Part shown: piece by piece, positions 30,282 to 46,538 of the stretch
How positions within the stretch are numbered: the first letter of the stretch is position 1
Layout: every line of letters begins with the position of its first letter
Sequence record: AP018399.1
DNA: 64,000 bases
Direction: 5' to 3' (one strand)
Notes under the pieces: model-generated
Database searches by the model: none
Told to the model about the DNA's origin: nothing
The model's input: only the letters and a program-made list of their open reading frames with translations
Translations under genes and position numbers: made by a program

Positions 30282-30390
30282 GGGAATGTAGCTCAGAGGA
30301 CAGAGCGCAGGGCGAGGAAGGGACTGGTTTTCCACCAGTAAACCCATCCAATCTCAGAAGTCAGTGGTTCGAATCCATTCATTCCCACCA
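30282..30390 (+). ncRNA. tRNA-like RNA with extended anticodon arm (109 nt)
   Basis: Acceptor GGGAATG/CATTCCC-ACCA, normal D and T arms, ~33 extra nt. Confidence 0.75.
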
Positions 30391-30562
30391 TTTTCGCAAC
30401 ACAATTGCACAGACACTAAATACCGTTATGAACAAACCATATTACAAACGATATTACGCCAAAGCCTAACAGGGCCGTATACGTTTGTGTGCGGTTCTGC
30501 AACGGAACCGTAGTACAGTGGTTATCTGATTCATAAATTCCCCTTAGTTTTACAAACAATTT

Positions 30563-30651
30563 GGACTCGTTCCCATAGCTGGCCGAATGGAGCGGACTCT
30601 TAATCCGACAGCGAAAGCTCATCGTAGGTTCGAATCCTACCGGGTCCACCA
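30563..30651 (+). tRNA. tRNA-Lys(CUU) with long variable arm
   Basis: Loop CTCTTAA; V-arm AGCGAAAGCT; CCA. Confidence 0.85.
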
Positions 30652-30691
30652 AATTTTACGCACTGGCGCTTGCGCCGTGTGACACGTCTAA

Positions 30692-30768
30692 GGGACGGTA
30701 GCTCAACGGTCTAGAGCAATCGGCTTTTAACCGATAGGTTGTGGGTTCGAATCCCACCCGTCTCACCA
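30692..30768 (+). tRNA. tRNA-Lys(UUU)
   Basis: Cloverleaf with CCA. Confidence 0.95.
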
Positions 30769-30773
30769 ACAAC

Positions 30774-30860
30774 GGATAGGTATGCAAGCGGTCAACGCAA
30801 TCGGATTGTAAATCCGCCGCCTTAAGGGCTTCGAAGGTTCGAATCCTTCTCTATCCACCA
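30774..30860 (+). tRNA. tRNA-Tyr(GUA)
   Basis: Class II cloverleaf with CCA. Confidence 0.95.
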
Positions 30861-30864
30861 ATTT

Positions 30865-30936
30865 GGGCTTCACAATCTATAGTGAGAACGCCGTAACTCG
30901 GCGCAGTCGGCGACTAGGTATCGCCAAAGTCCACCA
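30865..30936 (+). ncRNA. divergent tRNA-like RNA with G3.U70 and ACCA end
   Basis: GGGCTT/AAGTCC acceptor and three hairpins; no TTCR loop. Confidence 0.55.
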
Positions 30937-30941
30937 TCTTC

Positions 30942-31042
30942 GTCAACTAGTAGCTTAATAGGAAAGCGGCCGGGAGCGCCCGGTAATAGCACGAAACCCT
31001 TGTGGGTTAGCGATGTGGGCTGCGATACCCACCTAGTTGACA
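30942..31042 (+). ncRNA. tRNA-like RNA with 8-9 bp acceptor stem
   Basis: GTCAACTAG/CTAGTTGAC, D-like arm, T-like GTGGG/CCCAC; no CCA. Confidence 0.5.
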
Positions 31043-31114
31043 ATCTCTTCATCTTCCCCTACAATTTGCCTCGTTGTTTTAACCCTTTCATTTTAACCAA
31101 CCAAGGAAATTACT

Positions 31115-32026
31115 TTGAAGAAGATTTTTACCCTGCTGTTTGCGTCCATCATGGCCCTGAGCCTGTCGGCCTGTCGTGGTGAACTGGTGGAAGTCCCGCC
31201 TGCCCACGTCGGCAAAATCATGACCAAGGACGGCTACCGCGAAGGCGTCATCGGTACCTCCAAGTTCCGCCTCGACGTGTGCTACAACTACTGCGACAAG
31301 CTGGTTCTGCTGCCGGTCGCTGACCAAGCGAACATCGAAACCCTCGACATTTTCATGCCGCAGGACAAGCTCAAGCTCAAGGTCACCATCCGCACCAACC
31401 TGACCATCACCGACAAGAAGCAGATGGACTCGCTGTTCAACAGCGTTGCTCCTACCGAGTCGGAAGAGAGCCAGAAGGTTGCCCGCATCGGCCGCGATAT
31501 CGTCTACAAGACCTATGCGCAGCAGATTATCCAGACCGAAGCTCGCGAATACCTGAGCCAGTTCACCATCGCCGAAGTCGCAAGTTCGATGGAGAAGGTG
31601 AATGCTGACCTGTCGGCCCGTCTGTCGAAGGCCATCAAGGAACGCACCCCGTTCAACGTTCGCTACGTCGGCATCACTGGTATCGAATACCCGGCCATCA
31701 TCACCGAAGCGCAGGAAAATGCTGCGAAGCGTCGTGAAATGATTGAGCAGGAAAATGCGCAGAAGCAGGTTGACCAAGTGAAGCTGGAACGCCAGTTGAA
31801 CGAAGCTCAGTTGCAGCGCAAGATTGACGTGGAAAAGGCGGAAGCCGATGCCGAAGCTGACCGCATTCGTGCCGTCGCTGCCAACAACCCGGCCGTCATC
31901 AAGCTGCGTGAACTGGAAAATGAGCGTGCATGGATTGACGCTTGGAAGGCTGGTGGTTCGCAAGTCCCAAGCGTCGTGACCGGTGAGCAGGGCAGTAACT
32001 TCCTGATGCAGATGCCGAAGAAGTAA
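31115..32026 (+). CDS. SPFH/band-7 family lipoprotein
   Basis: Lipobox LSAC, SPFH-like core and C-terminal coiled coil. Confidence 0.75.
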   Translation: MKKIFTLLFASIMALSLSACRGELVEVPPAHVGKIMTKDGYREGVIGTSKFRLDVCYNYCDKLVLLPVADQANIETLDIFMPQDKLKLKVTIRTNLTITDKKQMDSLFNSVAPTESEESQKVARIGRDIVYKTYAQQIIQTEAREYLSQFTIAEVASSMEKVNADLSARLSKAIKERTPFNVRYVGITGIEYPAIITEAQENAAKRREMIEQENAQKQVDQVKLERQLNEAQLQRKIDVEKAEADAEADRIRAVAANNPAVIKLRELENERAWIDAWKAGGSQVPSVVTGEQGSNFLMQMPKK

Positions 32027-32045
32027 TCCCGCACAGGGGAATGCA

Positions 32046-32074
32046 GAAAAGGGAGCCGAAAGGTTCCCTTTTTT
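32046..32074 (+). terminator. intrinsic terminator
   Basis: GGGAGCC-GAAA-GGTTCCC-TTTTTT. Confidence 0.85.
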
Positions 32075-32133
32075 GTTGACACAAGTTCTACATCTGGTAT
32101 AATTCCCTCATCATCAACGGAGAAGTTCAACAC

Positions 32134-32553
32134 ATGGTTCTGTTCCTCAATTACCTGCCGTACCTCATCATCGCTCTGGGTCTGTTCCTCTGCTACCGTG
32201 CCAGCGTCAAGCACAAGGGCACCGACAAGGTTGGCAAGAGAATCGTCCTCTGGCTGGCCCTGACCATCGTCGCTCTCATCGCCCTGCGTGCAGTGAGCAA
32301 TGGATATCTCGGCAAGGCTGTCGGTGCGAAGCTGGAAACCCCGACCGTGGAAGAACTGGCTACCGAAGCCGAAGAAGCCGCCCCCATCAAGGACGTGCTG
32401 CGCAAGCCTGACCGAACGGCCGAAGAGTCCGACAAGCACTTCGCTGCTCTGACCGACTGGCGAGCCGACAAGGCAGCGCGGGAGAACCCGCCGAAGCCGG
32501 AACCGGAAGCCACTACGGAAACGCAGGAACTTCCACTCCCCGCCAAGCAGTAA
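32134..32553 (+). CDS. membrane protein
   Basis: Two TM segments. Confidence 0.7.
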   Translation: MVLFLNYLPYLIIALGLFLCYRASVKHKGTDKVGKRIVLWLALTIVALIALRAVSNGYLGKAVGAKLETPTVEELATEAEEAAPIKDVLRKPDRTAEESDKHFAALTDWRADKAARENPPKPEPEATTETQELPLPAKQ

Positions 32554-32637
32554 AAATGAAGAGTCAAGTATCGAAAGGTACTTGACTCTTTCATTATGAA
32601 CGGTTATAATTTCGGCCTACTCCAACGGAACACCGAA

Positions 32638-34299
32638 ATGACCGACCAGATTGACGACACCGCCGAACGCATCAAGAAGCTGCTGATTTCGTTGGTGGAA
32701 AGGCTCGGCCCGGATGCTGACCCGGATATGGTCGCCGAGATTCAGATGATGCGTGCGGCCGACATTATCAAGTCGCACCTGACCGATATCACCAAGGCCC
32801 GTACCATCGTGCTGACTGGCGATACGTCGCACCTGTCGGTTCGCAGCATCATCCAGCGCCTTGCGGATATCGACAAGCCGAAGCGGTACGACTTCCAAGA
32901 CGACAACGTTCACGAACAGGAATTCCTGCGTGGCCTGCTGCATTGCGTCCCCAGCTACATCATGCGTGGCGACGTGACCAAGGAACAGGTCATGAATGCC
33001 ATCGACGGCAAGGAATGGCTGGAACTGCCGGAAGGTCGTGAGTACAAGTGCTACGACTGTGCCCAGCCGCTCAAGGTGGCGTTCAAGGGCAATGAAGTCC
33101 GTATCACTGCCGAGAAGGTGTGCGAACACAATCACACGTTCACCATCGAAGTGGATTTCCCCACGGGTGAAGTCGTGTTCGATGACTGGCCGGCTCGTTT
33201 CTCGGAAGCCCGTGATGCTGGTTTCATCACCGAAACCGATGATGGCGAATCCATCAACTACCTCAAGGGCCAGCGTCAGAGTACGGACAACTATGCCAGT
33301 CAGCAGATTGTCCATCACAGCGTCGGCAACACCTGTCCCACGTTCTTTGTGAACAAGGAAACGGGTGCCATCCAGATTGGTAGCCGCTGGGATGATGAGC
33401 AGGACGAACACGTCACTCCGGAAGGCATGGAGGATGTTGGTTCCTTCTGCACGGACCTGTGGTGGGTGACCATGCTCGACCGCAAGTTCTACGACACCAT
33501 CGTGGGCAAGCTGCCGCAGCAGAAGTCGAAGAAGTATTACGACAAGGAACTGCACATCGCGCACATTCCTCCGGGCCGCTATCGCTTTACCTGCTATGGC
33601 CGCACGGAAGAAGACATGGATATGTTCATGACCGGTGAACGTATCGGCGATGCCAGCGATTTCATGCCGCCGTTCGACGTGCTGGCTTCGAAGCGTCTCA
33701 TGACTCTGGACGAAGCCACGTTCAAGTACCTGTCGATGTGGGGTAAGCCGCGAGGCAATCCGCTGTCCGCTCGTTTCCGCTTCCTCGACTACGTGTTCAA
33801 CACCATCGGCAATGGCCTGCGTTCGAAGGGCGAACTGTTCAACGCTTACAGCATCGCCAATGATGCCGTGGGTGATGTGATTCCGCCTTCGGATGACCCG
33901 CTGGACAAGAAGAATCCCTATCCGAATTTCAAGAAAGAATACAGCACCATCTACAGCGTACCGCTGAAAGACATGCCTACGGATTGGCTGGAAGGCGTCT
34001 TGTGGTATTACGAAGAATGCAAGACCTACTTCGAAAATGGTGCGGAGGGCTATAGCTATGCCTACCCGTCAAAGCAAAACCGGGACGACGAACTCGCCAA
34101 GCACTTCGAAAAGTATCGCAAGGACGGACAAAGCGAAGAAGAATACTTCGCTGCGGTGTCCAAAGCATACGAATGTGAATTCCGGGGTGACATTCCGGAT
34201 TTCCAAACCCGACGCTGGGAAAAGGAAAAGGCTCGCATCCTTGCTTTCATCAGCGACACCATGAAGTACATCAAGGAAGAGCTTGACACGCGAGGTTGA
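32638..34299 (+). CDS. large hypothetical phage protein
   Basis: ~550-aa ORF; CYDC and CEHNH motifs. Confidence 0.8.
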   Translation: MTDQIDDTAERIKKLLISLVERLGPDADPDMVAEIQMMRAADIIKSHLTDITKARTIVLTGDTSHLSVRSIIQRLADIDKPKRYDFQDDNVHEQEFLRGLLHCVPSYIMRGDVTKEQVMNAIDGKEWLELPEGREYKCYDCAQPLKVAFKGNEVRITAEKVCEHNHTFTIEVDFPTGEVVFDDWPARFSEARDAGFITETDDGESINYLKGQRQSTDNYASQQIVHHSVGNTCPTFFVNKETGAIQIGSRWDDEQDEHVTPEGMEDVGSFCTDLWWVTMLDRKFYDTIVGKLPQQKSKKYYDKELHIAHIPPGRYRFTCYGRTEEDMDMFMTGERIGDASDFMPPFDVLASKRLMTLDEATFKYLSMWGKPRGNPLSARFRFLDYVFNTIGNGLRSKGELFNAYSIANDAVGDVIPPSDDPLDKKNPYPNFKKEYSTIYSVPLKDMPTDWLEGVLWYYEECKTYFENGAEGYSYAYPSKQNRDDELAKHFEKYRKDGQSEEEYFAAVSKAYECEFRGDIPDFQTRRWEKEKARILAFISDTMKYIKEELDTRG

Positions 34300-35500
34300 T
34301 GGGTTATAATAAACCCATGACCTACACCGTCCAATACGCAGACAAGAGTCGGCTTCCGACTCTTGTCGCTGCCTACCAACTGGTTGACCAAGCTCTCAAG
34401 GGCTTGGCAATCACGAAGGATTGCGCGGTTACGCTCAATCGCTTCTACTACGACAATGAATTCTTCCTCTTCAACTTCTCCGTGACGTTGAAGGGGACCA
34501 AGCCCTGCATGTACCTGCTTTCCATCCCCAATGACAGTGCGATGGGCATGATGGGCTGGACTATCCGCAGCAACAAGTGGAATGGTCAGCGGGAGCCAAT
34601 CGACTCGCCTGCGTTGTCATTCGGCCACTTCATCCGCAAGACGGACCACGACAAGAACAAGAAGAAGAAATGAACATCAACGAATACAAGAAGCGCAAGT
34701 TCCGTGAACTCAAGGCCAAGAAGAAGGCATTCGGCTTCGAACTATCGGTGCATGACCCGGCTTCCATCATCGCTGCCGCCAAGGCAATCGAAATGGCCGA
34801 ATGGATGGACAAGGGCGTTCTGGTCGAATTCAAGACCGATTACAACGCGCGTGAACTGAAAATCTATACCGATAACCCGGCTTTGGCTGGTGAAATGCGT
34901 CTTCTGTGTTGACAAATCATTGCCAGTATGATTAAATACTGGTAATGACAAACGAAAAAGACATAGCTACAAGGGTAGCTGAAAAAGAAGCTGAGATTGA
35001 ACGTTACAAAGAAATCCTCCACCGGTACCTAACCGGACCCTCACGAACCACTCGCTGGTACAACAACGGCAAGGTTCATCTGGAAGAGCTAGAAGCAGAA
35101 CTAGCTGAACTCAAAAAAGAACTTGACTCTCCAAGTTAATCTGCTATAATTACCCAATCTTCCCAACAGGAACACTTCAATGCCTTGCAGTGATGGTGGT
35201 GTGGCGTATCCCCCGAGCAAAGAAGAACTGGCCGAGCGCGCTTTCATCAAGCGTGCCCCCGGTATGCTCTGCTCGGCCTGTCGTGCGCTGGAATCGTTCG
35301 GCTACGACTTCGACCTGAACCCGGAACTCGCCGACTGGTGGGCCAAGCACAAGGCCGAAGATGCCGAGCGTGAGCGCAAGGAACACGCCAAGCGACTGGA
35401 ACTGGAACAGGTGAACGAAATCATCAAGAAGCCGTTCAAGAACCTGACGGCCGAAGAAAAGCGTCTGCTCAAGAAGCACAACTACCTCTAAGGAACCAAC

Positions 35501-36040
35501 ATGAAATACATTCTCCTGATTCTCGCTCTGATGTTCTCGGCTCCGGTCTTCGCACAGCAGACCGAACAGCGCACTCCGAGCGAACAACTGAACGCTGAAA
35601 TCGCTCAGATGAGCGATGCACAGAAGGCCGAAGCTCTCAAGGCCATCCATGCCGGTCAGTCCGATACTGCGGCCAAGGCTCGCGAGTGGATTGATATCGG
35701 CAATGGCCTCGGTGCTGGTCTGGCCGCTACCGCTGAAAAGCTGGGCGTGGTTGCCAACGACTTCGCCAAGTCTCCGGTCGGCAAGCTGGCAATGGTTCTC
35801 ATCATCTGGAATTACATGGGTGATGACCTGTTGGGCGTCATCATCGGCTTCCCGATGCTGTTCCTCGGTGGCCTGATGTTCGTCTACCAGATGCGCAAGA
35901 CCTATGGCATCTACAACGAAAAGGGCAAGTTCATTCAGTACGACGTGGTTGCTCTGAATGACAGCCGTTGTGGCCCCGGTGTGTTCATGAGCATCGTGTT
36001 CGTCATCTACACCATTGTGTCGATTGTCGTCATCTGCTAA
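35501..36040 (+). CDS. exported/membrane protein
   Basis: Signal peptide and TM helices. Confidence 0.75.
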   Translation: MKYILLILALMFSAPVFAQQTEQRTPSEQLNAEIAQMSDAQKAEALKAIHAGQSDTAAKAREWIDIGNGLGAGLAATAEKLGVVANDFAKSPVGKLAMVLIIWNYMGDDLLGVIIGFPMLFLGGLMFVYQMRKTYGIYNEKGKFIQYDVVALNDSRCGPGVFMSIVFVIYTIVSIVVIC

Positions 36041-36046
36041 GATAAC

Positions 36047-36122
36047 GGCCCGTTAGCTCAGCGGTCAGAGCAAGAGCCTCTAAAACTCCGGGTCGTGGGT
36101 TCGAATCCCACACGGGCCACCA
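36047..36122 (+). tRNA. amber-reading tRNA (CUA), A73
   Basis: 76-nt cloverleaf, loop CT-CTA-AA, CCA. Confidence 0.85.
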
Positions 36123-36129
36123 ATCAAAT

Positions 36130-36205
36130 GCTTTCGTAGCTCAGCGGTCAGAGCAAGAGCCTCTAAAACTCCGGGTCGTGGGTTCGAATCCCACCGAAAG
36201 CGCCA
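36130..36205 (+). tRNA. amber-reading tRNA (CUA), G73
   Basis: Same D/AC/T arms as the previous tRNA but a different acceptor stem. Confidence 0.85.
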
Positions 36206-36245
36206 AGTTGTTGACAAACTCCCATCACTAAATTATACTTGTGCC

Positions 36246-36560
36246 ATGAACGAAATCATCCAGAAGATGTTCCCCACTGGCACTCTCAATGGCCGTGGTG
36301 GTACCGAAGTGAACGGTCTGACCAAGGGCACGGTTCCGGCTGGTACCATTCTCAAGAGTGGACAGGACAAGTTCGACAACAAGGGCCGTCGTGAATTCTA
36401 CGCGGTCGAACTGGATGGGCATGTCGCGTACCTGCGAGTGTGCGAAGCATATCCGGGTAGTGGCTATGACGAATTCGCGGTTATACATCGCGTCGTCAAA
36501 GCCGAAGAGACGGAAGAAGTGAATGAAATTCTCAACACCGTTTCTCGTATGACCAGCTAA
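36246..36560 (+). CDS. hypothetical protein
   Basis: ORF with promoter. Confidence 0.65.
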   Translation: MNEIIQKMFPTGTLNGRGGTEVNGLTKGTVPAGTILKSGQDKFDNKGRREFYAVELDGHVAYLRVCEAYPGSGYDEFAVIHRVVKAEETEEVNEILNTVSRMTS

Positions 36561-36630
36561 AAAGTAGTTGACAAGTTCGATTTTTGTAGTAAAGTATCAA
36601 TCTCGGTGACGGCATAGAGGCCACTCACTG

Positions 36631-36660
36631 GTTCTTTAACAACTTGAGCGGAAACAAGTT
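36631..36660 (+). promoter_or_regulatory. boxA (GTTCTTTAACAA) plus hairpin AACTTG-AGCGGAAA-CAAGTT
   Basis: Matches the rrn/nut boxA consensus, downstream of TTGACA at 36568. Confidence 0.65.
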
Positions 36661-36851
36661 CATAGACTGAACATGCCTCGGTAGGTCAGTATGGTGGCAA
36701 CACCATCTGGGGATGAGGACATGCTAGGAACCAATATGCTTTGGATACGCAGTGGTCGTTCACTAGCCACGACTACGGTATACGCTATCAGCACACAATA
36801 TGCATTGAATGTGCGGCGATTTGAAAGCTAGAGGCGTGTTCAATCTATGAA
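36659..36851 (+). ncRNA. unknown ~190-nt structured RNA
   Basis: 21-bp terminal helix and an internal GNRA hairpin ATGGTG-GCAA-CACCAT. Confidence 0.6.
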
Positions 36852-36855
36852 TTTT

Positions 36856-36980
36856 TGGTAGGTAAGCAAGTGGGCAACGTAAGACGGCAATGGTGTAGGT
36901 ATCCGTGAGGTATCAGAGTACGGTTGAGTCTCCCAGAAACCGTTTCAACTTCGTGAGTTCGAATCTCACCCTACCAGCCA
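36856..36980 (+). ncRNA. tRNA-like RNA (Tyr-like body) with large central insertion
   Basis: TGGTAGG/CCTACCA-GCCA; T arm GTGAG-TTCGAAT-CTCAC. Confidence 0.7.
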
Positions 36981-36987
36981 ATTCTAT

Positions 36988-37052
36988 GCACAGGTTACTT
37001 GGAAGCATCCGGTTGCGCACCGTGATGGGTGGTTCGATACCACTTCTGTGCC
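36988..37052 (+). ncRNA. D-arm-reduced tRNA-like RNA (loop TTGCGCA)
   Basis: GCACAGG/TCTGTGC and a T arm; no CCA. Confidence 0.5.
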
Positions 37053-37066
37053 GCGATTCGTATAGT

Positions 37067-37213
37067 ATTCTGATGGCGAAATAGGTAGACGCGGGGGTCT
37101 AGGCCAATATGGAGAAGGGAGCTAAACATTCCCTCTGCTGCTCATGGTCGGAAACTGCTGTGAAAGCGTTGCAGCAAAACGCTGACCGTGTGGGTTCGAC
37201 TCCCACTCAGAAA
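37067..37213 (+). ncRNA. tRNA-like RNA (Leu-like body) with extended anticodon arm
   Basis: Leu-type D loop GGCGAAATAGGTAGACGC, V arm and T arm; ~60 extra nt. Confidence 0.65.
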
Positions 37214-37224
37214 TTACTATATAA

Positions 37225-37620
37225 CAGTATGGTCGTAATCCCTTTAAAATGAAGGGCGTTCGGACGCGGGTTCGATTCCCGCCACGTCCACCACATGCAT
37301 CTTATAGCCAGAACTGAATCTGGTAAGAGGTAGTCAGCCACATTGAACCTTTCAGTAGAGCGCTGACCTAAGTCGCATGTAGTAACCCGCTTTAGGGTGC
37401 AAGTGATGGGCGTGCCAAGGTTTCGACGGGCGAAGATAGTGGAGAAGGCGACTAGCCAGAGTAGGCTCTAAAACTAAAACCTAAAGTAACTGCCAACGCA
37501 AATACTTTCGATTACGCACTAGCTGCCTAATCCCAAGCACATCCAGCACTTGGTCACCGAACGCTGGGCAATAGCAGTCCTTGGACTGTCTATTGTGAAA
37601 CATCTTCTGGTTCAGCCAGC
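37225..37620 (+). ncRNA. ssrA: circularly permuted (two-piece) tmRNA; tag ANANTFDYALAA
   Basis: Acceptor piece ending CACGTCCACCA (37293) precedes the 5' GGGCGTG (37408); G3.U70; tag 37492-37530; outer ends approximate. Confidence 0.85.
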
Positions 37621-37637
37621 CTAGGCAAAAGACGCAT

Positions 37638-37727
37638 GGCGGTATGGCACTCCGCATACAGAGGGTGTATTCACAATATGCAGTTCGTTATTGAGAGGAA
37701 ATGTAGGTTCGATTCCTACGGTCGCCG
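37638..37727 (+). ncRNA. degenerate tRNA-like element
   Basis: T arm GTAGG-TTCGATT-CCTAC and weak acceptor GGCGGT/GGTCGCC. Confidence 0.35.
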
Positions 37728-37857
37728 CAGACCCCACTATGCTGGTCTGTGAAAAACAGTCGATATGGGTTAATATGGAAAACGCCTCTCATCTTTCAAA
37801 TAGGAGTTGACAATGAGCATTGTTTTTGCTACTATGTCGGCTTCTGTAACAAGCTAC

Positions 37858-38051
37858 GCCCTTGAGTAAGACAGTCAGGGAGTAAGCTCTTAATGTGAGC
37901 ATGGTCGCCCCCACCTTTTGATAGGCTAGCCGGGGAGAGGTTCGAATCCTCTAAGCACCGTTAGGCTGAGACGAAAGGACTACGTTGCGAAGCATTGCAC
38001 GCCAATTCCGGAAACGGCTGGTAGTGTTAGCATCCGACTACAAGGGCACCA
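37858..38051 (+). ncRNA. 194-nt tRNA-like RNA with ~88-nt insert between T arm and acceptor 3' strand
   Basis: GCCCTTG/CAAGGGC-ACCA; internal AGAGG-TTCGAAT-CCTCT. Confidence 0.65.
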
Positions 38052-38104
38052 AATTAGGTGTTGACAAACGAAGAAAGTATGGTAATATGTACTTCTTCAC
38101 CGGT

Positions 38105-38192
38105 AACCACTGACGATTGGCCCACCGCAAAAGGGCCGAAACAGAGAGACACAAGCGAGTTTACCTCCTTCCTCGCCGTCTCCTGTCTGGTT
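38105..38192 (+). ncRNA. hammerhead ribozyme-like RNA (type I), predicted cleavage after GUC at 38187
   Basis: CUGACGA, stem II GGCCC/GGGCC, GAAA, stem III ACAG/CTGT, stem I AACCA/TGGTT; extra UU after A9. Confidence 0.7.
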
Positions 38193-38214
38193 TGACAACT
38201 TGAGTGCGGAAACA

Positions 38215-38995
38215 ATCTCAAGGTGGAATAGCGTACAGTGATGTGCGTAAAGTGTGGCCCGCTCAGGCTGCGCACCATGCAAATGGCTCCATCAAACAAG
38301 CACCGACTCCGGGGCACGCCAAAAGTGTGTCACGGCCCTTGTGAAGAACCACGAGGGAACTTGGAAAAGGTGCCCGACAAGCTAGTCTTGGGACAACTGA
38401 GACAGTTTCCACCCGCAAAGTGGATTAGGGATGCAACACGGATACCAAGCACTAGTCAAGGTGTAGAACATAAGCATGAGGCTGCAACCAAGTGCGATGT
38501 TCAGTGAAGTGGGACTGTTTAACAGGCAGAACCGCATATACAATCCGAGTAGCCGCAAGCGAAAGGATACAGGGGCGTGTTGTATTTGGTACTTCAAAAG
38601 GGTATCGAGCAACGGCAACACACGTCCTGAGCAACAAAACAACTTCATAGGTTAATGAAATTAATTAAACGCAAAGTTGTTGCCGGTGCATGATGAAAGT
38701 GACGTAATGCTTGACACGCAAGTGAATCAAGCCATTCCGAGGCTCGCAAGGCAGAGGGGTGTTGTGGGAAAGTCGCACGTTTGGGGTCGAACCCTTTACT
38801 GCTCGCAAGGCAGGCGGTAGACAGAACCATGAATAGTCATGCACGACAGTGGAAATGCCACCACTTTAATCTAGGCCGTCATGGTTGCTACTCACATGAG
38901 TGAGTGGATAACGGTAGAAACTTCGCTCGCAAGCGGAGTATAATGACCGGAAAGGTAACCAATCAATGCTGTAATCTCAGGCAGGCTTTTCCAAT
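38215..38995 (+). ncRNA. giant ornate ncRNA, GOLLD-like (~780 nt)
   Basis: No credible ORF, many GNRA hairpins, tRNA context, GGCGTGTTGTA..CAAAAGG and GTAATCTCAG motifs recalled from GOLLD. Confidence 0.6.
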
Positions 38996-39052
38996 AAATT
39001 CAAGACCTTGCAGCTTTAAGCGCAATCACACTAAATAGATTTACATTTCTAT

Positions 39053-39138
39053 GCGGGTGTGGCCGAGTGGTCGATGGCACTAGTCTTCCAAACTAGACTC
39101 AGAAATGGGCGCGAGTTCGAATCTCGCCACCCGCTCCA
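39053..39138 (+). tRNA. tRNA-Gly(UCC) with long variable arm
   Basis: Loop CTTCCAA, U73, V arm CTCAGAAATGGG. Confidence 0.85.
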
Positions 39139-39263: not shown

Positions 39264-39342
39264 CGCGCGGTACAATCAATATCGGCAGATGGGCACCCTC
39301 ATAAGGTGTCGGTTGGGAGTTCAAGTCTCCCCTGCGCTACCA
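39264..39342 (+). tRNA. tRNA(CAU), initiator-like C1 mismatch
   Basis: C1.U72; lacks the three anticodon-stem G-C pairs. Confidence 0.75.
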
Positions 39343-39704: not shown

Positions 39705-39779
39705 GGAGCATTCGTCTATCGGTTAGGACGCTAGACTTTCACTCTGGAAAGAGGGGTTCGACTCCCCTATGCTCTACCA
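39705..39779 (+). tRNA. tRNA-Glu(UUC)
   Basis: Cloverleaf with CCA. Confidence 0.95.
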
Positions 39780-39783
39780 ACAC

Positions 39784-39813
39784 AGAAGCCCGCCTAGTGC
39801 GGGCTTTTCTTTT
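39784..39813 (+). terminator. intrinsic terminator ending the RNA island
   Basis: AGAAGCCCGC-CTAGT-GCGGGCTTTT-CTTTT. Confidence 0.85.
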
Positions 39814-40540: not shown

Positions 40541-40830
40541 CGCCTAGGGTGGGGAGAGTCACTTTTCGCAGGTTATGGCTCCCCACAAGAATGAAATCTG
40601 CCAGTTTACCGCCCCAAGCTCGTGCTGTGGCATGGTCACCGTATTTGACCGGTCTACCACTACAGCCGGACCGACACACTAGGACAACTCTCACTAATCC
40701 TAGGTAAAGCGGTCGCCCTGTGAGAAGGGAAAGGATGTACCGACAAGTAGCGGCTCCCTCGTGGAGTTTCATGGTTGCGAAGCCATGATACTAATGAAGC
40801 GCGAAATCAGGTACAGCCCGAGCTAGGTGG
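40541..40830. ncRNA. unknown structured intergenic RNA
   Basis: AGCTCG-T-GCTGT/ACAGC-C-CGAGCT closing helix with several inner hairpins. Confidence 0.5.
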
Positions 40831-40884
40831 CTTGCATTTGACCTTCTGGTTTGTTATAATCAAGACCAATCCAGAGGTACCGAC

Positions 40885-41613
40885 ATGAAAATCACATCAA
40901 CGTGGCTCCTTACATCCGCTGCCCAAGTCGTCATCACGATTGCTGTGGGCGCGTTCATGCTGGTCAATGCCGCAGTGATTGGCTTCTATGTCATTGAAGG
41001 ATATGGGAATTATCAGAAGAAGGAATCTGCGGACGTAATCCTCACCGGTCGCGTTCACACGTTCTCGTCTCTGGAATTCACCACGAATCCGGCCGGTACC
41101 ATGCGTACCTGCGTCGGGGTGACCGCTAGCAACGGTCGGATGGTGGTTCGCGAACTCGGTGATTGGGAAGGAAACCTTCCGGCCGGTGACTTCTGTGGGC
41201 AGCTTTTCAGCGCCAGCAACCTCACCAACTGGAAGCATATGGCACCAACATCCAACGGCACCAGTGTGCTTGAGAAGGTGTTGTGGTCCATTGCTTTCTT
41301 CGTCGTGTTCATGAGTGGTGCGTATCTGGTGGCGTCGATTCCTGCCAATCTGGTGGCTATCGCATTGCCGGGACTGGCTCCGATTGCCAAGTTGATGGCG
41401 TTGGCGTTCACGCTTCCTGTGCTGCTGTTCTGGGCAGTGTTCGTCACCAGTGCATGGCAGTACCATCCGTCGTATTGGAAGTCGCCTGACGGCTATGTGG
41501 TCGAGACTGAGAAGGTCTTCATCACGCGAGACAAGCGAGTGTTCACCGCTCCGGAAACGTTGTTCGGATGGACCTCAAGCAATACGATGCAAGAACGAAA
41601 GGTGTTCGAATGA
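40885..41613 (+). CDS. multi-pass membrane protein
   Basis: GAGG SD and hydrophobic helices. Confidence 0.7.
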   Translation: MKITSTWLLTSAAQVVITIAVGAFMLVNAAVIGFYVIEGYGNYQKKESADVILTGRVHTFSSLEFTTNPAGTMRTCVGVTASNGRMVVRELGDWEGNLPAGDFCGQLFSASNLTNWKHMAPTSNGTSVLEKVLWSIAFFVVFMSGAYLVASIPANLVAIALPGLAPIAKLMALAFTLPVLLFWAVFVTSAWQYHPSYWKSPDGYVVETEKVFITRDKRVFTAPETLFGWTSSNTMQERKVFE

Positions 41614-41796
41614 GTTTCTTCAAGTGGTATGACCGGCATCCGAAGAATCGGTTCTGGTTCACCATCGGTGTCATCGCATTCGTCCTGATTCCTCCTGTAG
41701 TGACATGGACGGCTCCGAAATCACTGACGTGGATTGCGATTCTGCTGAATGCTGGCATTGCAGTGCTGCATATGCATAACTGGATGAAGTTGAAGC

Positions 41797-42198
41797 GTGG
41801 TTCCAAGTCGTAGAGAACAGCGCTTCTACAAGAAGGCCAGAGAAGCAAGCAGTCGTTCAAATCACTACAAGGCCAAGATTGGTGCGGTAATTGTCACAGG
41901 GAACTATGTCCTTTCAGAAGGGTGCAGCCGTGAGAAGAGCCATACAAGACAACACCGGTACGACCGTAGGATGAAGTACCACGGTGGTCAGTCGAAGCTT
42001 CATGCTGAGATTGACGCCCTTGTGTCATCTGGCCGTGTCGATTTGACTGGTGCCGAAATCTACATCTACAGGGAAGACAAGAAGGGTAATCTTGCCAACT
42101 GTAGACCTTGCGTTAGTTGTACACAGGCGTTGAAGGACGCTGGTGTGCGTCACATCTACTACACCCACAAAGAGGGGTTTGCTTATGAGCAGTTCTGA
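41797..42198 (+). CDS. CMP/dCMP-type zinc deaminase-like protein
   Basis: HAE and PCVSC motifs. Confidence 0.8.
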   Translation: MVPSRREQRFYKKAREASSRSNHYKAKIGAVIVTGNYVLSEGCSREKSHTRQHRYDRRMKYHGGQSKLHAEIDALVSSGRVDLTGAEIYIYREDKKGNLANCRPCVSCTQALKDAGVRHIYYTHKEGFAYEQF

Positions 42199-42341
42199 TG
42201 CAGCGTTCCGTGAGAAGTTCATGAAGTTGATGCAATCACGGAAAGAAATGTCGCCGGAACAGTTGACAAGCGAAGATGAGTTCGATAATATGGTCGAACT
42301 TGGTGATGCAACTGAGTGATTTCACTCTAATTGCAACCACA

Positions 42342-42348
42342 CTAAATA
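42342..42348 (+). promoter_or_regulatory. T4-type late-promoter-like CTAAATA (also 29931, 30416, 39031, 45061, 45733, 46091, 53690)
   Basis: Recurrent motif, in four cases 10-16 nt before a tRNA 5' end. Confidence 0.6.
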
Positions 42349-42360
42349 GTTTTACAATAT

Positions 42361-42437
42361 CCGGGTGTAGCGCAGTCTGGTAGCGCACTTGCTTTGGGAG
42401 CATGGGGTCGCAGGTTCGAATCCTGCCGTCCGGACCA
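42361..42437 (+). tRNA. tRNA-Pro(UGG)
   Basis: Cloverleaf, G37. Confidence 0.95.
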
Positions 42438-42448
42438 AATTCATAGTT

Positions 42449-42525
42449 CAGGGTGTAGCGCAGTCTGGTAGCGTGGCCGGTTTGGAGCCGGGCGGTCGTA
42501 GGTTCAAATCCTACCATCCTGACCA
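42449..42525 (+). tRNA. tRNA-Pro(UGG), A37 variant
   Basis: Loop TT-TGG-AG. Confidence 0.85.
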
Positions 42526-42568
42526 AAATTAAGGTATGTGTACCGGAACTACACATATGACGAACAAT

Positions 42569-42659
42569 GCCACTTTGCCTGAGTCCGGTCGATAGGAACT
42601 GCCTTGTAAGCAGTCGGGATAATACCCCATCGCAGGTTCAAATCCTGTGGGTGGCACCA
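42569..42659 (+). tRNA. tRNA-Thr(UGU) with long variable arm
   Basis: Loop CTTGTAA; V arm GGGATAATACCCC. Confidence 0.85.
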
Positions 42660-42667
42660 AATTCTAC

Positions 42668-42744
42668 AGGTCGGTAGTTCCAACGGCTAGAACGATGGAC
42701 TCCAAATCCATGCGATGGGGGTTCGAATCCCTCCCGGCCTGCCA
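42668..42744 (+). tRNA. tRNA-Trp(CCA)
   Basis: Cloverleaf, G73. Confidence 0.95.
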
Positions 42745-42942
42745 ATTTCTCATGACGCTAAAGTTCTGGTTCAAATGGAATGCACAGAAGGTCGCTGACC
42801 AACTGAACGAGCAATATCGTCAGTATGAGGACAACTGCTTTCCGTGGGAAGTACAGCGACAAGGTATTCGGTACTTGATTTTAAAGAAGTACCATGCTAA
42901 TGTATCTGGAACGTACACAATAGCAGCATCAAAACGACATAT

Positions 42943-43017
42943 AGGGGCGTAGTACAGCGGTTAGTGCGCTTGACTCTGACTCATGAAACGGTGGTTCGAA
43001 TCCATCCGCCCCTGCCA
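42943..43017 (+). tRNA. tRNA-Gln(CUG)
   Basis: Cloverleaf. Confidence 0.9.
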
Positions 43018-43303
43018 ATTCGGATGACTACAATGAAATTTGAAGTTTCCAAGCGTTTCACTATCTACGGTCTGAATGCACATGAACGAGAATTCATGTG
43101 TAATCTTCTCACCAAAGGCCAATACAACTGGTCCAATTGGGATAATGATACGTTCGCGGTCATCTTCCATGAAGGTTCGTTGCATACCATCCCCGAAGAT
43201 GATGTGGTGAAGTTCCTGAACATTCTTGACCATCGTCGGAAGGTTCATATATACTTCGAATACACTGGCGACGGACGCTTCAACATCATCGTCAAGTAAC
43301 AAT

Positions 43304-43379
43304 AGGGGTTTAGCCAAGTGGTTAAGGCATGGGCCTTTGACTCCCAGACCGGTAGGTTCGATTCCTCCAACCCCTGCCA
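43304..43379 (+). tRNA. tRNA-Gln(UUG)
   Basis: Cloverleaf. Confidence 0.9.
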
Positions 43380-43419
43380 AACCAGTTGACAAATGAACTT
43401 GATGGGTTATAATTAATCC

Positions 43420-43626
43420 ATGAACATACATTCGTTGACCCATGCAGTATCGGTGACCAGCACCAAGGCGGATTGTCTGGACTTCCTTGGCCTTGACCAC
43501 TCCACGCGGAACTTCCGGCTCATGTCGGATGCCATCAAGAAGCACGGCATCGACACCAGCCACTTCGTAGGAATCAAGGCTTCGGAGTACGTGGCACGCT
43601 TCAAACCAGTTGACAATCAGTTTTAA
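43420..43626 (+). pseudogene. N-terminal remnant of an HNH homing-endonuclease-like gene
   Basis: LGL ... N ... IKKHGIDTSHF N-terminal motif without the HNH domain; flanked by a 14-bp repeat. Confidence 0.5.
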
Positions 43627-44110
43627 TCTGGTAAGATAACATCATCACATCGGGTAAGCCCTTCACTGACCAGTGAGTCCGAGGAAGGGAGAGAAAGCAG
43701 GCCGGGTTGTTGGGGGCGCTGCCGAAAAGAGGGAGAGACAGTGGCACGAATGAAGCAAATGCATCTGGATATCATCGAAAGCCAAGAGGCTGACGAGGAA
43801 GGTATCATCAATGCGGTGCCAACTCCGGTTCCGTCTCCCGCACGGGAGGTCGCAAATGCCGAAGTATCTCCTGATTGATTCCACTTCGGTTTTCATTCCG
43901 GGCGACGAGCGTTCACGCACGAATCCCGGTCACGGATACCCCGAGCGGACGGAAACGTACCCGGTGTTGAAGTGGTTCGATACCGAGCAGCAAGTGCTGG
44001 AATATCTGGAAACGTGGGGTCGTAACATCAAAGACCCGCAGATATGGGAACTCGCTGGTAAAGTCAAACTGGAAGTGAAGACTACCTTGTCACTTTCCAA
44101 GTAATATTCC

Positions 44111-44197
44111 GGGCATGTGGCGGAATTGGTAGACGCGGCAGACTCAAAATCTGTTGGTAGAAATACCGTGTCGGTTCGATTCCGACCTTGCCCACCA
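44111..44197 (+). tRNA. tRNA-Leu(CAA)
   Basis: Class II cloverleaf. Confidence 0.95.
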
Positions 44198-44601
44198 AAC
44201 AAGAGAACGCAATGAAGATTTCCTTCCGTACTGCTGTCATGATTGCCATCGCTGTTGGTGTCGCGGGAAGCCTGCTTCTCCCCGTCAATGCGAAGGCTCA
44301 GGATGTTATCAGCCAGACCAACGCCACCATGATGGCGTTCCAGCCTGCGATGACTGCCGACACCAGTTCCAGCAAGCCCACAACGCCGCCTCCGGCCAAG
44401 CTGTACCGTGAGCGCGTACCGGGTAAGCCGGAAGAAGGATTCGTTCCTGTGACGGCTCCGGTGAAGAAGAACTACCAGTACACGAGGGTGGACTATCCCT
44501 ACGGTGAAGTTCTCATCTTCGAAGACTTCGTTCGTCGCAATGTGTGCTACATCACCATCAATAACGGTCGAATCTCGGAATCCTGTGTTCCCATGAAGTA
44601 A
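44188..44601 (+). CDS. exported hypothetical protein
   Basis: Signal peptide. Confidence 0.65.
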   Translation: MPTKQENAMKISFRTAVMIAIAVGVAGSLLLPVNAKAQDVISQTNATMMAFQPAMTADTSSSKPTTPPPAKLYRERVPGKPEEGFVPVTAPVKKNYQYTRVDYPYGEVLIFEDFVRRNVCYITINNGRISESCVPMK

Positions 44602-44983
44602 GGAAAACAAATGAAAACTGCACTAAAGGTTCTGGGTATTCTGGCTCTGGTTTTCTTCTTGCTGGTCGGCGGCTGCACTATGCTGGTCATGATGACACCA
44701 AAAAAGCCGGTTGTAGCCGAAGTAAAGAAGGATGCCATCGACCAAACTCGTGATATCGTGAATTTCACGTACAGTGCTGCCAAGCAGTGTGAAAAATACG
44801 GCGATGGGTCTAGCTCATGTAGTCTGTTTAAGAACCAAACACGTAATCGGGTAATTCGTGATATCATCTATGCTCCGGCTGTTCCGGGTGAAGTGATGGC
44901 TGAATTCAATAAGCGCGGATACTTCACCGAATATACCGAACAAATGTTGTATATTGAAGCTGTCGATAAACATCTTCGATAAC

Positions 44984-45058
44984 GGGCCGGTAGCATATGG
45001 GTAAATGCGTCCGACTCATAATCGGTTGAGCAAGGTTCGATTCCTTGACGGCCCACCA
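44984..45058 (+). tRNA. tRNA(CAU), Ile2 or Met
   Basis: Loop CTCATAA. Confidence 0.9.
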
Positions 45059-45076
45059 AACTAAATAGGTTTACAC

Positions 45077-45153
45077 GGTAATATAACTCAGCCCGGTAGA
45101 GTAGCGCCCTCATAAGGCGTTTGTCGCAGGTTCGAATCCCGCTATTACCACCA
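45077..45153 (+). tRNA. tRNA(CAU), Met or Ile2
   Basis: Loop CTCATAA. Confidence 0.9.
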
Positions 45154-45201
45154 AGATTTATCTTGACAGCCTCAAATGAGGCTGTTATAGTTTTAGAACA
45201 T

Positions 45202-45290
45202 GACGCGGTGCCGGAGTCTGGTTGAACGGGATGGACTGCAAATCCATAAGCGAAAGCTCATCACAGGTTCAAATCCTGTTCGCGTCTCCA
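45202..45290 (+). tRNA. tRNA-Cys(GCA) with long variable arm
   Basis: U73; V arm AGCGAAAGCT. Confidence 0.85.
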
Positions 45291-45295
45291 AATAC

Positions 45296-45445
45296 GGGGT
45301 GTTAGGGAATTGGAAAACTCGCCGGAAGTAATCCGGTAGCTTGTGATAAGGTTGCAACCACCGAAATCGACTGCATTCTAGAACGTAGTCACTAGTAGGT
45401 ATCATGATAGCTTGACTTTGGTTCGAATCCAGAGACACCCCACCA
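45296..45445 (+). ncRNA. 150-nt tRNA-like RNA with ~80-nt variable-arm domain
   Basis: GGGGTGT/ACACCCC-ACCA, AC arm GCCGG-AAGTAAT-CCGGT, T arm. Confidence 0.75.
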
Positions 45446-45978
45446 ATTCACAACAAAGGAAGTAAGATGTTCGCTCTACTGAGAAAGAAGTTCGGCACTG
45501 CTGCTTTCGTGTTCCCGCTGATGGCGCTCATGGGCATCGTCTTCCATGTGGAGCCGAAGGATATCCTGCTGGGTTCCGTCCTGATGTACATCGTTACGCT
45601 CGCTCTGCTGATGCTGGACGACGTGTTCGTGTTTGAATTCGCGGACAATGGCGCGCTTCTGAGCGAGGAAGAGCTTGTCGAATTTGACAAGCTGGTTTCA
45701 CCTGTACAAGTTACAGTGGAAGTGCAATACAACTAAATAGCTTTACAAGGTGGGATATGAAGAAAATCAAGGGGTTGTTCGGGAAGTATCCCGTCGCTGC
45801 TAACTCTTCATCGTATTTCGCCGCAACATTCGTTGGAACCGGTGCAGTAGCTACCGTATTCAATCGACCGATAGAAGAAGCAATCTTCATATCAGTCATC
45901 ATGGCCGTAACGGGCGGTGTAATTGGATGGGTAAAAACTGTTGACAAAGACGGTGAAAGCGAATAAGATACAAACTTC

Positions 45979-46067
45979 GGGTCGGTCGCATAGTGGCCGA
46001 GTGCAACGGGCTGTTAACCCGTCGAGTTAATACTCCATCGCTGGTTCGAATCCAGCCCGGTCCGCCA
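45979..46067 (+). tRNA. tRNA-Asn(GUU) with long variable arm and G3.U70
   Basis: Loop CTGTTAA; acceptor GGGTCGG/CCGGTCC; G73. Confidence 0.85.
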
Positions 46068-46261
46068 AATTCACAAACGTTACAACCATACTAAATAGTT
46101 TTTATGAACGCTATCCATATTGACAACCGAGCCGACCGATTTATCAGCATTATTGCTGATGATAGCGTCAGCGCGCGTGTGGATAGTTTTAGTGTTGTAG
46201 CAGTAGATTCAAGTAACAAGCAAGAGTAAGGCCAAGGAATCATTCTCGGTCTTACAGACAC

Positions 46262-46340
46262 GGGAATGTAGCTCAGTTTTTGGTAGAGCAGTAGCCTGAA
46301 AAGCTTCGTGTCGTAGGTTCGATTCCTATCATTCCCACCA
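46262..46340 (+). tRNA. tRNA-Phe(GAA)
   Basis: Cloverleaf. Confidence 0.9.
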
Positions 46341-46373
46341 AATTTCGATGTGCGCAGCAATGCGTTCGTCAAC

Positions 46374-46448
46374 GGTGAGTTCGTTTAACGGTTAGGATTC
46401 CGGCCTGTCACGCCGGGGACACGGGTTCGATTCCCGTACTCACCGCCA
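46374..46448 (+). tRNA. tRNA-Asp(GUC)
   Basis: Cloverleaf, G73. Confidence 0.95.
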
Positions 46449-46454
46449 ATCTTT

Positions 46455-46538
46455 GGGGTCATGGTGTAAAAAAGCATTGCGCCCTGTCTGGGCGTAGATG
46501 ATGGAGAGGTAGCGCTGCCTGCCCATCTGGCCCCGCCA
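46455..46538 (+). ncRNA. Asp-like tRNA mimic with T loop replaced by a hairpin
   Basis: GGGGTCA/TGGCCCC-GCCA, loop CTGTCTG, T stem GATGG/CCATC around 18 nt. Confidence 0.65.

Follow-up and report, generated by a model that had tools for sequence, protein, structure and literature searches.

What are the tRNA-shaped genes that lie among the canonical tRNA genes of a jumbo phage and escape the programs that find tRNAs? The window analysed here, a stretch of 64,000 nucleotides (nt), matches positions 1-64000 of Xanthomonas phage XacN1 (AP018399.1), a jumbo myovirus of 384,670 bp, with 100% identity. It holds an island of stable RNAs, all encoded in one direction, in which ARAGORN, run on the window, finds 28 tRNAs and a permuted transfer-messenger RNA (tmRNA), and to which Rfam adds a GOLLD RNA (38570-38983, 227 bits). 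An original prediction had singled out six RNAs of this island, here E1 to E6, as a family of tRNA-scaffolded RNAs carrying base-paired cargo at four different positions. We find that about ten unannotated RNAs on a tRNA frame, with large extra folded domains, lie among the XacN1 tRNA genes; several of them are conserved among relatives of the phage, so that they probably function as RNAs, in a role as yet unknown, and are not broken tRNA genes. The elements are the following.

30282-30390, plus strand: E1, a tRNA-like gene of 109 nt (Rfam tRNA 45.6 bits; folding; relatives)
36856-36980, plus strand: E2, a tRNA-like RNA of 125 nt (folding; five orthologs)
36988-37055, plus strand: X1, a mini tRNA-like RNA without D arm or CCA, with a canonical T arm and loop UUGCGCA
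37067-37213, plus strand: E3, a tRNA-like RNA with a large internal domain and no CCA (folding; ortholog in phage Xoo-sp13)
about 37638-37735, plus strand: X2, a weak tRNA-like element with T arm GTAGG-TTCGATT-CCTAC
37858-38051, plus strand: E4, a multi-helix RNA of about 190 nt (folding; nine orthologs)
39264-39342, plus strand: X3, a noncanonical tRNA(CAU) (Rfam tRNA 31.3 bits; five phages)
45296-45445, plus strand: E5, a full cloverleaf with a variable-arm domain (folding; seven orthologs)
46455-46538, plus strand: E6, a tRNA-like RNA directly 3' of tRNA-Asp (folding; relatives)
47790-47869, plus strand: X4, a D-armless tRNA-like RNA (seven phages including Xoo-sp13 and CM1)

These shapes do not occur at random. 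A strict T-arm pattern (5-bp stem, TTCRANN loop, G-C closing pair) matches 36 times on the plus strand of the window and never on the minus strand, against 0.26 matches on average and 2 at most in first-order Markov random sequences with the base-transition frequencies of the window. Nine of the 36 matches fall outside the ARAGORN calls, and these are E1 to E5 together with the four further elements X1 to X4. Direct reading and folding confirm all six predicted RNAs at the positions listed, with the anatomy attributed to them, including an NCCA end in five of six (E1, E2, E4, E5 and E6) and a canonical T arm in five of six (E1 to E5, that of E4 being T-arm-like). Specifically, E1 joins acceptor GGGAATG/CATTCCC with ACCA, a D arm and T arm AGTGG-TTCGAAT-CCATT to an irregular hairpin of about 50 nt that replaces the anticodon arm. 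E2 (acceptor TGGTAGG/CCTACCA with GCCA, T arm GTGAG-TTCGAAT-CTCAC) carries a Y-shaped two-hairpin domain at the position of the anticodon loop, and E3 is closed by a 6-bp stem (TTCTGA/TCAGAA) and has T arm GTGGG-TTCGACT-CCCAC. In E5 (acceptor GGGGTGT/ACACCCC with ACCA) the variable-arm position is occupied by a three-way-junction domain of about 75 nt, and in E6 (acceptor GGGGTCA/TGGCCCC with GCCA, 7-nt loop CUGUCUG containing GUC) the T stem is present and the T loop is replaced by a 17-nt insert bearing a hairpin. E4 has a closing stem (GCCCTTG/CAAGGGC with ACCA) and a T-arm-like hairpin (AGAGG-TTCGAAT-CCTCT), with about 88 nt between this hairpin and the 3' closing strand. Inserts thus range from 17 to 88 nt at four positions. 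A 7-bp acceptor with discriminator and CCA is complete in E1, E2, E5 and E6, is present in E4 with a CCA that is not conserved, and is not found in E3; a normal anticodon arm is missing from E1, E2 and E3, the loop of E5 drifts, and E6 alone keeps a 7-nt GUC loop.

Conventional classifiers largely pass over these RNAs. None of E1 to E6 is called a tRNA by ARAGORN, and among the six only E1 (45.6 bits) exceeds the gathering threshold of the Rfam tRNA model RF00005 (29 bits), as does X3 (31.3 bits). No tRNA match was obtained for E2 to E6 at the gathering score, for E2 to E4 at E values up to 5, or for E5 and E6 at E values up to 10, and no other Rfam family matches any element at E values up to 5-10. 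Nor is any of E1 to E6 itself called a tmRNA by ARAGORN or Rfam, the only tmRNA-family match outside the tmRNA gene being one of 17 nt and 8.7 bits on the T arm of X2. Since tRNA finders and Rfam miss these elements, tRNA islands of jumbo phages are under-annotated.

The six RNAs do not form a single family as had been proposed. Sequence comparison shows that they are not copies of each other, and their frames resemble different tRNAs: E1 shares identical ends with tRNA-Phe (46262), E2 is similar to the phage tRNA-Tyr in its 5' third, and E3 to tRNA-Leu in its D region. Complementarity and repeats of 11-mers between the elements and the window are at chance level, apart from the ends of E1 shared with tRNA-Phe and the D region and T arm of E3 shared with tRNA-Leu. 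E1, E2, E3, E5 and E6 would accordingly each have arisen separately from a different tRNA gene, E4 being a larger RNA with a T-arm-like module. As for the apical 7-nt loops ending in CA that had also been pointed out, they are present, and each begins with U and ends with A, but those of E1 and X1 fold to 5 nt; CUAAACA (E3) and UUGCGCA (X1) are conserved, whereas the E1 hairpin is specific to XacN1.

Are the inserts truly base-paired? Single-sequence folding energies are weakly better than those of shuffled sequences (z from -0.3 to -3.2, the latter for E6), and because these values are modest, thermodynamics alone is insufficient and comparative evidence bears the claim. In GenBank, the relatives are Xanthomonas phage Xoo-sp13 and two Stenotrophomonas phages, CM1 and RAS14. 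About a dozen further members of the clade, metagenome and Logan contigs with 50-100% identity, were reached through homologs of three small neighbouring open reading frames (ORFs). Relatives are given below by L numbers, CM1 being L003, and the order of the tRNA array is kept across all of them. A protein-anchored search of IMG/VR with ORF088 yielded no relatives, and an exact-pattern search of IMG/VR for the E4 insert yielded nothing.

E5 is the best case of a scaffold plus cargo. Across its seven orthologs, pairing reaches 98.3% of cells, all 7 end in ACCA, and the covariation score is 0.265 against 0.152 in shuffles (0/500 reach it, a control that overstates significance here) and at most 0.04 when the pairs are slid. 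The acceptor covaries and D-stem pairs swap GC/UA and GC/CG, whereas the cargo domain is almost invariant, more conserved than its own tRNA frame, and its few changes preserve pairing (U-A to A-U or G-U, with A-U/G-C swaps at the base). By contrast, the anticodon loop measures 7, 8 or 9 nt across the orthologs and is unconserved. The constraint of decoding has thus been lost while frame and cargo are kept, which points to selection on the frame and the cargo and not on decoding, and E5 is unlikely to decode.

E2 and E4 tell a similar story. In the five E2 orthologs (XacN1, L019, L010, L021 and Xoo-sp13), 95% of cells are paired, NCCA is kept in 5/5, and 12 of 28 pairs have undergone compensatory change, some of them in the acceptor and T stem and others in the insert, in its outer stem as well as its two inner hairpins. 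Among the nine E4 orthologs, which include that of Stenotrophomonas phage CM1, 93.6% of cells are paired and 13 pairs show double changes against 3.7 in shuffles (0/500), counts in which the closing and T stems of distant orthologs, misregistered by MAFFT and judged by eye, are left out or partly covered. A long-range helix that encloses the T-arm-like hairpin of E4 (AGUC/GACU) becomes AGCC/GGCU in L026, the long 3' hairpin of the insert covaries at 7/10 pairs, and the closing stem, although its sequence is entirely changed, still pairs in L013 (UGUCUGAA/UUCAGACA), L026 (AGUCUGUUA/UAACAGACU) and CM1 (UCUGAG/CUCAGA). Base pairing of the inserts is therefore borne out by comparison in E2, E4 and E5, although single-sequence folding barely beats shuffling, and the covariation that had been named as a test is found in both frame and insert of these three. 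For E4, on the other hand, placing an insert between T arm and acceptor overstates its likeness to a tRNA, the other insert positions being as described; E4 is better read, on present alignments, as a multi-helix RNA with an internal T-arm-like module than as a tRNA with an insert. It is not GOLLD either, since the RF02032 match falls on a separate gene (38570-38983) and E4 lies upstream.

Our preferred reading, held with moderate confidence, is that the elements are tRNA-derived, non-decoding structured RNAs that are expressed with the phage tRNAs, matured by the tRNA pathway and functional through their added domains. Frame and insert are both maintained in E2 and E5, which keep acceptor, D arm, T arm and NCCA as well as the inserted domain and so agree with the idea of a natural tRNA scaffold; E1 keeps the frame and not the insert, and E3 and E6 have too few orthologs, so that these three are ambiguous in this respect. 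Several observations weigh against this reading. The stretch from D arm to T arm of E1 is different in each phage, in length as in sequence (84-109 nt), and the copy in L022 is chimeric or truncated. E6 is patchy, being found in 3 of about 6 relatives and absent from L017, L019 and Xoo-sp13; its L020 counterpart shows 96% identity and a single compensatory change, located in the anticodon stem, and L012 has a larger variant that retains the GUC loop. E3 is patchy too, its only ortholog, in Xoo-sp13 (81% identity), having compensatory changes in the closing stem and one hairpin. NCCA ends only 2/9 E4 orthologs (ACCA in XacN1 and L019; AUCA, ACUA, AAAU, ACCC, UUCA, CUUU or CGAA elsewhere), and as the T-arm-like hairpin is moreover not adjacent to the closing stem, tRNA-type recognition of E4 by RNase P is doubtful. 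Complementarity of the elements to other plus-strand transcripts of the window is at chance level, and at permissive thresholds no insert contains an Rfam motif. Orthologs number 2-9 per element and are themselves related, and because the relatives are so few and so close, shuffle controls overstate significance. Finally, decay of tRNA genes is seen in the region: all that is left of a tRNA-Lys(CUU) gene at 30500-30545 is a truncated 5' part, the intact gene being found in the corresponding position of L010 (619-696), which indicates fast gain and loss of tRNA genes in the array.

Could the elements then be decaying tRNA paralogs, or tRNA genes with small insertions, that drift neutrally in a fast-turnover array? 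The tRNA-Lys remnant, the hypervariable arm of E1 with its chimeric copy in L022, the patchiness of E6 and E3, the lack of conservation of X2 (not kept in the closest relative) and the modest folding scores would all be expected under such decay, and tRNAs and a tmRNA of relatives carry a shared palindromic hairpin insert of 24-26 nt, so insertions into RNA genes do occur in the clade. Decay nevertheless leaves unexplained the compensatory changes that preserve frame and insert in E2, E4 and E5, a cargo in E5 that varies less than its own frame, and the retention of E4 from Xanthomonas to Stenotrophomonas phages. Even E1 keeps its acceptor, D arm, T arm and NCCA in XacN1, L021, L010 and Xoo-sp13, with compensatory changes in the acceptor. 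We therefore regard neutral decay as unlikely for the set, the subset that it fits being E1, E6 and X2. The earlier statement that the paired inserts argue against simple decay stands for at least three of the six elements, and is weaker for E1, with its hypervariable insert, and for the patchy E3 and E6.

The hairpin inserts of relatives also bear on the idea that the inserts are introns, removed to yield canonical tRNAs. In L026 (11038-11147) and L022 (18427-18545), tRNA-Lys(UUU) and tRNA-Leu(UAA) carry a hairpin of 31-34 nt between nucleotides 34 and 35; these tRNAs are otherwise perfect cloverleaves, and removal of the hairpin restores the anticodon loops CUUUUAA and CUUAAAA. In L017 (2720-2745), the spacer of the permuted tmRNA is likewise a hairpin with these ends (AAGUAYC...GRUACUU). 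The insert in these relatives may be a mini-intron, a processing hairpin or a small palindromic mobile insert. RNA ligases and a PNKP encoded by the phage would also suit splicing. However, the AAGUAYC...GRUACUU motif is absent from the XacN1 window, Rfam detects no Intron_gpI or ribozyme family there, the inserts occupy four different positions, and their removal from E1 to E6 restores no canonical arms. Splicing to canonical tRNAs, which had been named as an outcome that would overturn the prediction, is accordingly highly improbable, and introns are rejected for this window, where they suit no element, although relatives carry intron-like anticodon hairpins.

Under our preferred reading the elements would share the transcription and processing of the tRNAs around them, and their arrangement is consistent with this. 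Between 29.9 and 49.5 kb, the plus strand has 19 promoter-like sites, defined by a match to at least 10 of 12 consensus positions, and the minus strand has 0. The following promoters and neighbouring features are relevant here.

30244-30272, plus strand: sigma-70-like promoter TTGACA-17-TAATAT, ending 9 nt 5' of E1
36568-36595, plus strand: promoter of a non-coding RNA (ncRNA) operon comprising a leader RNA, E2, X1, E3, the tmRNA and X2; kept in Xoo-sp13 and CM1
36631-36651, plus strand: rrn-boxA-like element GTTCTTTAACAACTTGAGCGG in the operon leader; kept in Xoo-sp13 and CM1
37231-37530, plus strand: permuted (two-piece) tmRNA (Rfam 123 bits; ARAGORN)
37807-37835, plus strand: promoter dedicated to E4 (promoter match)
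38061-38983, plus strand: GOLLD RNA with its own promoter at 38061 (Rfam RF02032 match 38570-38983)
45163-45191, plus strand: promoter of the unit of tRNA-Cys and E5 (promoter match)

E5 begins 5 nt past the CCA of tRNA-Cys and E6 6 nt past that of tRNA-Asp, and the spacing between elements and tRNAs (3-11 nt) equals that among the canonical tRNAs of the array. In the operon leader (36600-36850), a hairpin precedes the box GTTCTTTAACAACTTGAGCGG, both lying 3' of the 36568 promoter. We take this box to be similar to the boxA of Escherichia coli rrn antitermination (TGCTCTTTAACAA). A similar box occurs at about 38195 in the 5' part of GOLLD, and the presence of such boxes in both the ncRNA leader and GOLLD suggests rRNA-style antitermination of phage ncRNA operons. 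Between the leader box and E2 lies an RNA of about 250 nt and of unknown kind, kept in Xoo-sp13, CM1, L010, L012 and L019. A search of IMG/VR with the boxA-leader pattern returned three contigs, without tRNAs or Rfam matches and irrelevant to the elements.

The crowding of elements around the tmRNA and GOLLD raises a further possibility, namely that the folds serve as processing punctuation, kept as cleavage sites at which RNase P and 3' endonucleases free the tmRNA pieces, GOLLD and the tRNAs from long ncRNA transcripts. Plant mitochondrial t-elements, tRNA-like folds at which RNase P/RNase Z cut longer transcripts, provide an established precedent (PMC1920247), and could indicate the role of X1, E3 and X2 around the tmRNA. 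E2, X1, E3, the tmRNA and X2 are indeed contiguous in one promoter-driven unit; E3 sits in a hairpin just upstream of the acceptor piece of the tmRNA; E4 lies directly upstream of GOLLD in five lineages (XacN1, L019, L022, L013 and CM1); and X1, E3 and most E4 orthologs lack CCA. Yet an acceptor/T minihelix would suffice for cleavage, which leaves the near-invariant 75-nt cargo of E5 and the covarying inner hairpins of E2 and E4 without explanation. The tmRNA moreover occurs without E3 in L019, L012, L010, L017, L022 and L026, E4 persists without GOLLD in L012, L017 and L010, and E1 and E4 have promoters of their own. Punctuation seems to us quite unlikely as a general account, X1, E3 and X2 being the subset that it fits.

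E3 itself, within whose 3' end the ARAGORN tmRNA call (37201-37621) and the beta_tmRNA match (37177-37596) both start, was also considered as a part of the tmRNA gene; this was rejected because the tmRNA model begins 3' of E3 and close relatives have the tmRNA without E3. In L019, the closest relative, the site of E3 is a plain hairpin (TATAGCA-TTCG-TGCTATA) 5' of the tmRNA, so that E3 is a module placed in a hairpin loop. The tmRNA (37231-37621), whose tag is ANANTFDYALAA, is present in all relatives examined except CM1, GOLLD in some only.

The further elements X1, X3 and X4 behave in a like manner and strengthen the picture. X1 has six orthologs (90-100% identity) with two compensatory pairs. 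X4 is 98% paired across seven phages, with a complete 4-bp stem swap from GUGC/GCAC to AACG/CGUU, and its 7-nt loop CUACGAA, with triplet ACG, is invariant in all seven; the same loop sequence is that of tRNA-Arg(ACG), the sole canonical tRNA-Arg of XacN1 having anticodon UCU. In X3, whose D loop in XacN1 has a 2-nt insertion that hides it from ARAGORN, an odd D region and a C1-U72 mismatch are kept across five phages and the stems covary. A decayed tRNA-Met was considered for X3 and rejected on account of this invariant D region and these covarying stems.

X3 and X4 also bring to the fore an explanation in which the RNAs still work as tRNAs and can be aminoacylated, their expanded arms carrying extra domains that are tolerated or protective (for example against host anticodon nucleases) while decoding continues. 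Canonical XacN1 tRNAs already depart from the usual form: tRNA-Lys(CUU) (30563-30651), Gly(UCC) (39053-39138), Thr(UGU) (42569-42659), Cys(GCA) (45202-45290) and Asn(GUU) (45979-46067) have class-II-like long variable arms and measure 86-91 nt, their orthologs in some relatives being ordinary (72-77 nt), and tRNA-Lys and tRNA-Cys share an identical variable arm (AGCGAAAGCU). In bacteria, long variable arms are normally confined to Leu, Ser and Tyr tRNAs. The clade with tRNA-chassis RNAs thus also has class-II-like Lys, Gly, Thr, Cys and Asn tRNAs, in addition to the hairpin-interrupted anticodons described above. Continued decoding would further agree with the U33-GUC loop of 7 nt and the G73-CCA end of E6, the invariant loop of X4, the CAU loop of X3 with its passing tRNA score, and the NCCA kept in E2 and E5. 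Against it stand the drifting anticodon loop of E5, the lack of an anticodon stem-loop of normal geometry in E1, E2 and E3, the lack of a T loop and of the D-loop GG in E6, the missing CCA of E3 and X1, and the failure of E2 to E6 to match the tRNA model even at E values up to 5-10. We consider it distinctly unlikely that the elements as a whole are working tRNAs, and the idea fits the subset E6, X4 and X3.

How might RNAs of the kind that we favour, tRNA-derived and non-decoding, be made and used? We infer their transcription, processing by RNase P, stability, any target and any role as a decoy. Strong sigma-70-like promoters would transcribe the elements, E1 and E4 from promoters of their own, E5 and E6 a few nucleotides behind tRNA-Cys and tRNA-Asp, and one operon behind the rrn-boxA-like leader. 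The acceptor/T-arm helix, the D/T elbow and the NCCA end would then direct excision by host RNase P, 3' trimming and the action of a host or phage CCA-adding enzyme, and the excised RNAs would be kept stable like tRNAs. The domain added at the anticodon or variable-arm position would be the functional part, most likely binding or titrating a factor that recognises tRNA, with a host tRNA-directed defence nuclease, a modification enzyme, a synthetase or a ribosome-associated factor as candidates; alternatively, it might link the RNA to neighbouring phage RNAs (tmRNA, GOLLD). The genes of XacN1 include a CCA-adding enzyme, two Thg1-like enzymes, PNKP/Hen1 and three Rnl2 ligases (PMC5852040; PMC7824862), which indicates a conflict centred on tRNA and makes a decoy or sponge role plausible. 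A Pfam scan of the ten ORFs adjoining the elements found no RNA-binding or processing protein. More specifically, XacN1-like jumbo phages may keep a natural repertoire of tRNA-chassis RNAs whose inserts and altered arms act as decoys or sponges against tRNA-directed immunity or tRNA-handling enzymes, a tentative proposal that we rate as possible though rather unlikely. If true, nature would have its own version of the engineered tRNA scaffold, and RNA-based counter-defence would gain a new class.

The window falls inside the direct terminal repeat of XacN1 (65,875 bp; PMC5852040), so that each of its features is present in two copies per genome. The original description of the phage lists 29 "tRNA-like sequences" per repeat, one of them a pseudogene, and is silent on E1 to E6, the tmRNA and GOLLD (PMC5852040); in the GenBank record none of these is annotated either, and 36560-39053 forms a 2.5-kb stretch without annotation. 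Two tandem amber-suppressor tRNAs (CUA; labelled Pyl by ARAGORN) lie at 36047-36205 of the window, and one or two copies are present in all relatives. Outside XacN1, a noncanonical tRNA-like gene with acceptor GTCGTGC/GCACGAC and T arm AGGGG-TTCGACT-CCCTG lies between tRNA-Cys and the E5 ortholog in L012 (9425-9525) and L029 (360-455) and is not found in XacN1. CM1 (L003, 22963-23099), like RAS14, where it is annotated as 'tRNA-OTHER', has a 134-nt tRNA-like gene (Rfam tRNA 39 bits) with an insert of about 60 nt after the D arm, and the phenomenon thus reaches beyond the closest relatives of XacN1.

Phage tRNA arrays are now largely read as an answer to host defences that cut or deplete tRNAs. 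If the XacN1 elements keep the shape of a tRNA and have traded decoding for a conserved domain, they would add an RNA-only layer to this conflict, and at least four new structured RNA families (E2, E4, E5 and X4) would stand beside the enigmatic permuted tmRNA and GOLLD. Neither Rfam 15 nor the literature searched contains a description of these families, or of conserved large variable-arm domains in a phage cloverleaf. ncRNAs that resemble tRNAs are nevertheless already known, among them tmRNA, YrlA, T4 species 1 and 2, and viral tRNA-like elements.

Of these, tmRNA likewise retains acceptor, T arm and CCA with a large domain replacing the anticodon arm, as in E1, E2 and E3, and E2 and E3 lie next to its permuted XacN1 representative. 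On direct reading, however, the elements are 109-147 nt long and lack a tag reading frame, a pseudoknot ring and G3-U70. The bacterial Y-RNA-like YrlA, in which a T-arm/D-arm mimic is embedded within a larger ncRNA, comes closest to the architecture of E4, but E4 has no Rfam match at permissive thresholds and no Ro-binding helix was recognised; the ten neighbouring ORFs contain no TROVE domain according to Pfam, no search aimed at rsr having been made genome-wide. T4 species 1 and 2 (rnaC and rnaD) are stable non-tRNA RNAs of unknown function, encoded in a tRNA cluster and released by tRNA processing. The XacN1 elements are likewise encoded in a phage tRNA cluster, but, compared by description only, the T4 RNAs are not known to be cloverleaves with inserted domains. 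Murine gammaherpesvirus 68 TMER genes show that a virus can use a tRNA-like element to express and process attached hairpins, through RNA polymerase III and RNase Z; that system is eukaryotic, and its cargo lies downstream of the tRNA-like part and not inside it. The t-elements of plant mitochondria, for their part, do not account for conserved, covarying inserts.

Two comparisons concern the insertion points themselves. Class II tRNAs, allo-tRNAs and aptamer-tagged tRNAs demonstrate that an extra helix is tolerated at the variable arm (PMC5389517, PMC7590224). E5 can be placed at the extreme of a series with the class-II-like Lys, Gly, Thr, Cys and Asn tRNAs of XacN1, its arm being a three-way junction of about 75 nt and not a single hairpin. 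The engineered tRNA scaffold, attributed to Ponchon and Dardel and the year 2007, reportedly carries its cargo in the anticodon arm and keeps the acceptor, D and T arms, which lets the cell process and stabilise the product. E1, E2 and E3 have the same layout, and naturally optimised insertion points in a tRNA frame could inform the design of RNA expression scaffolds; unlike the engineered molecules, the XacN1 RNAs, known from sequence alone, are natural and carry inserts also at the variable arm (E5) and in the T loop (E6).

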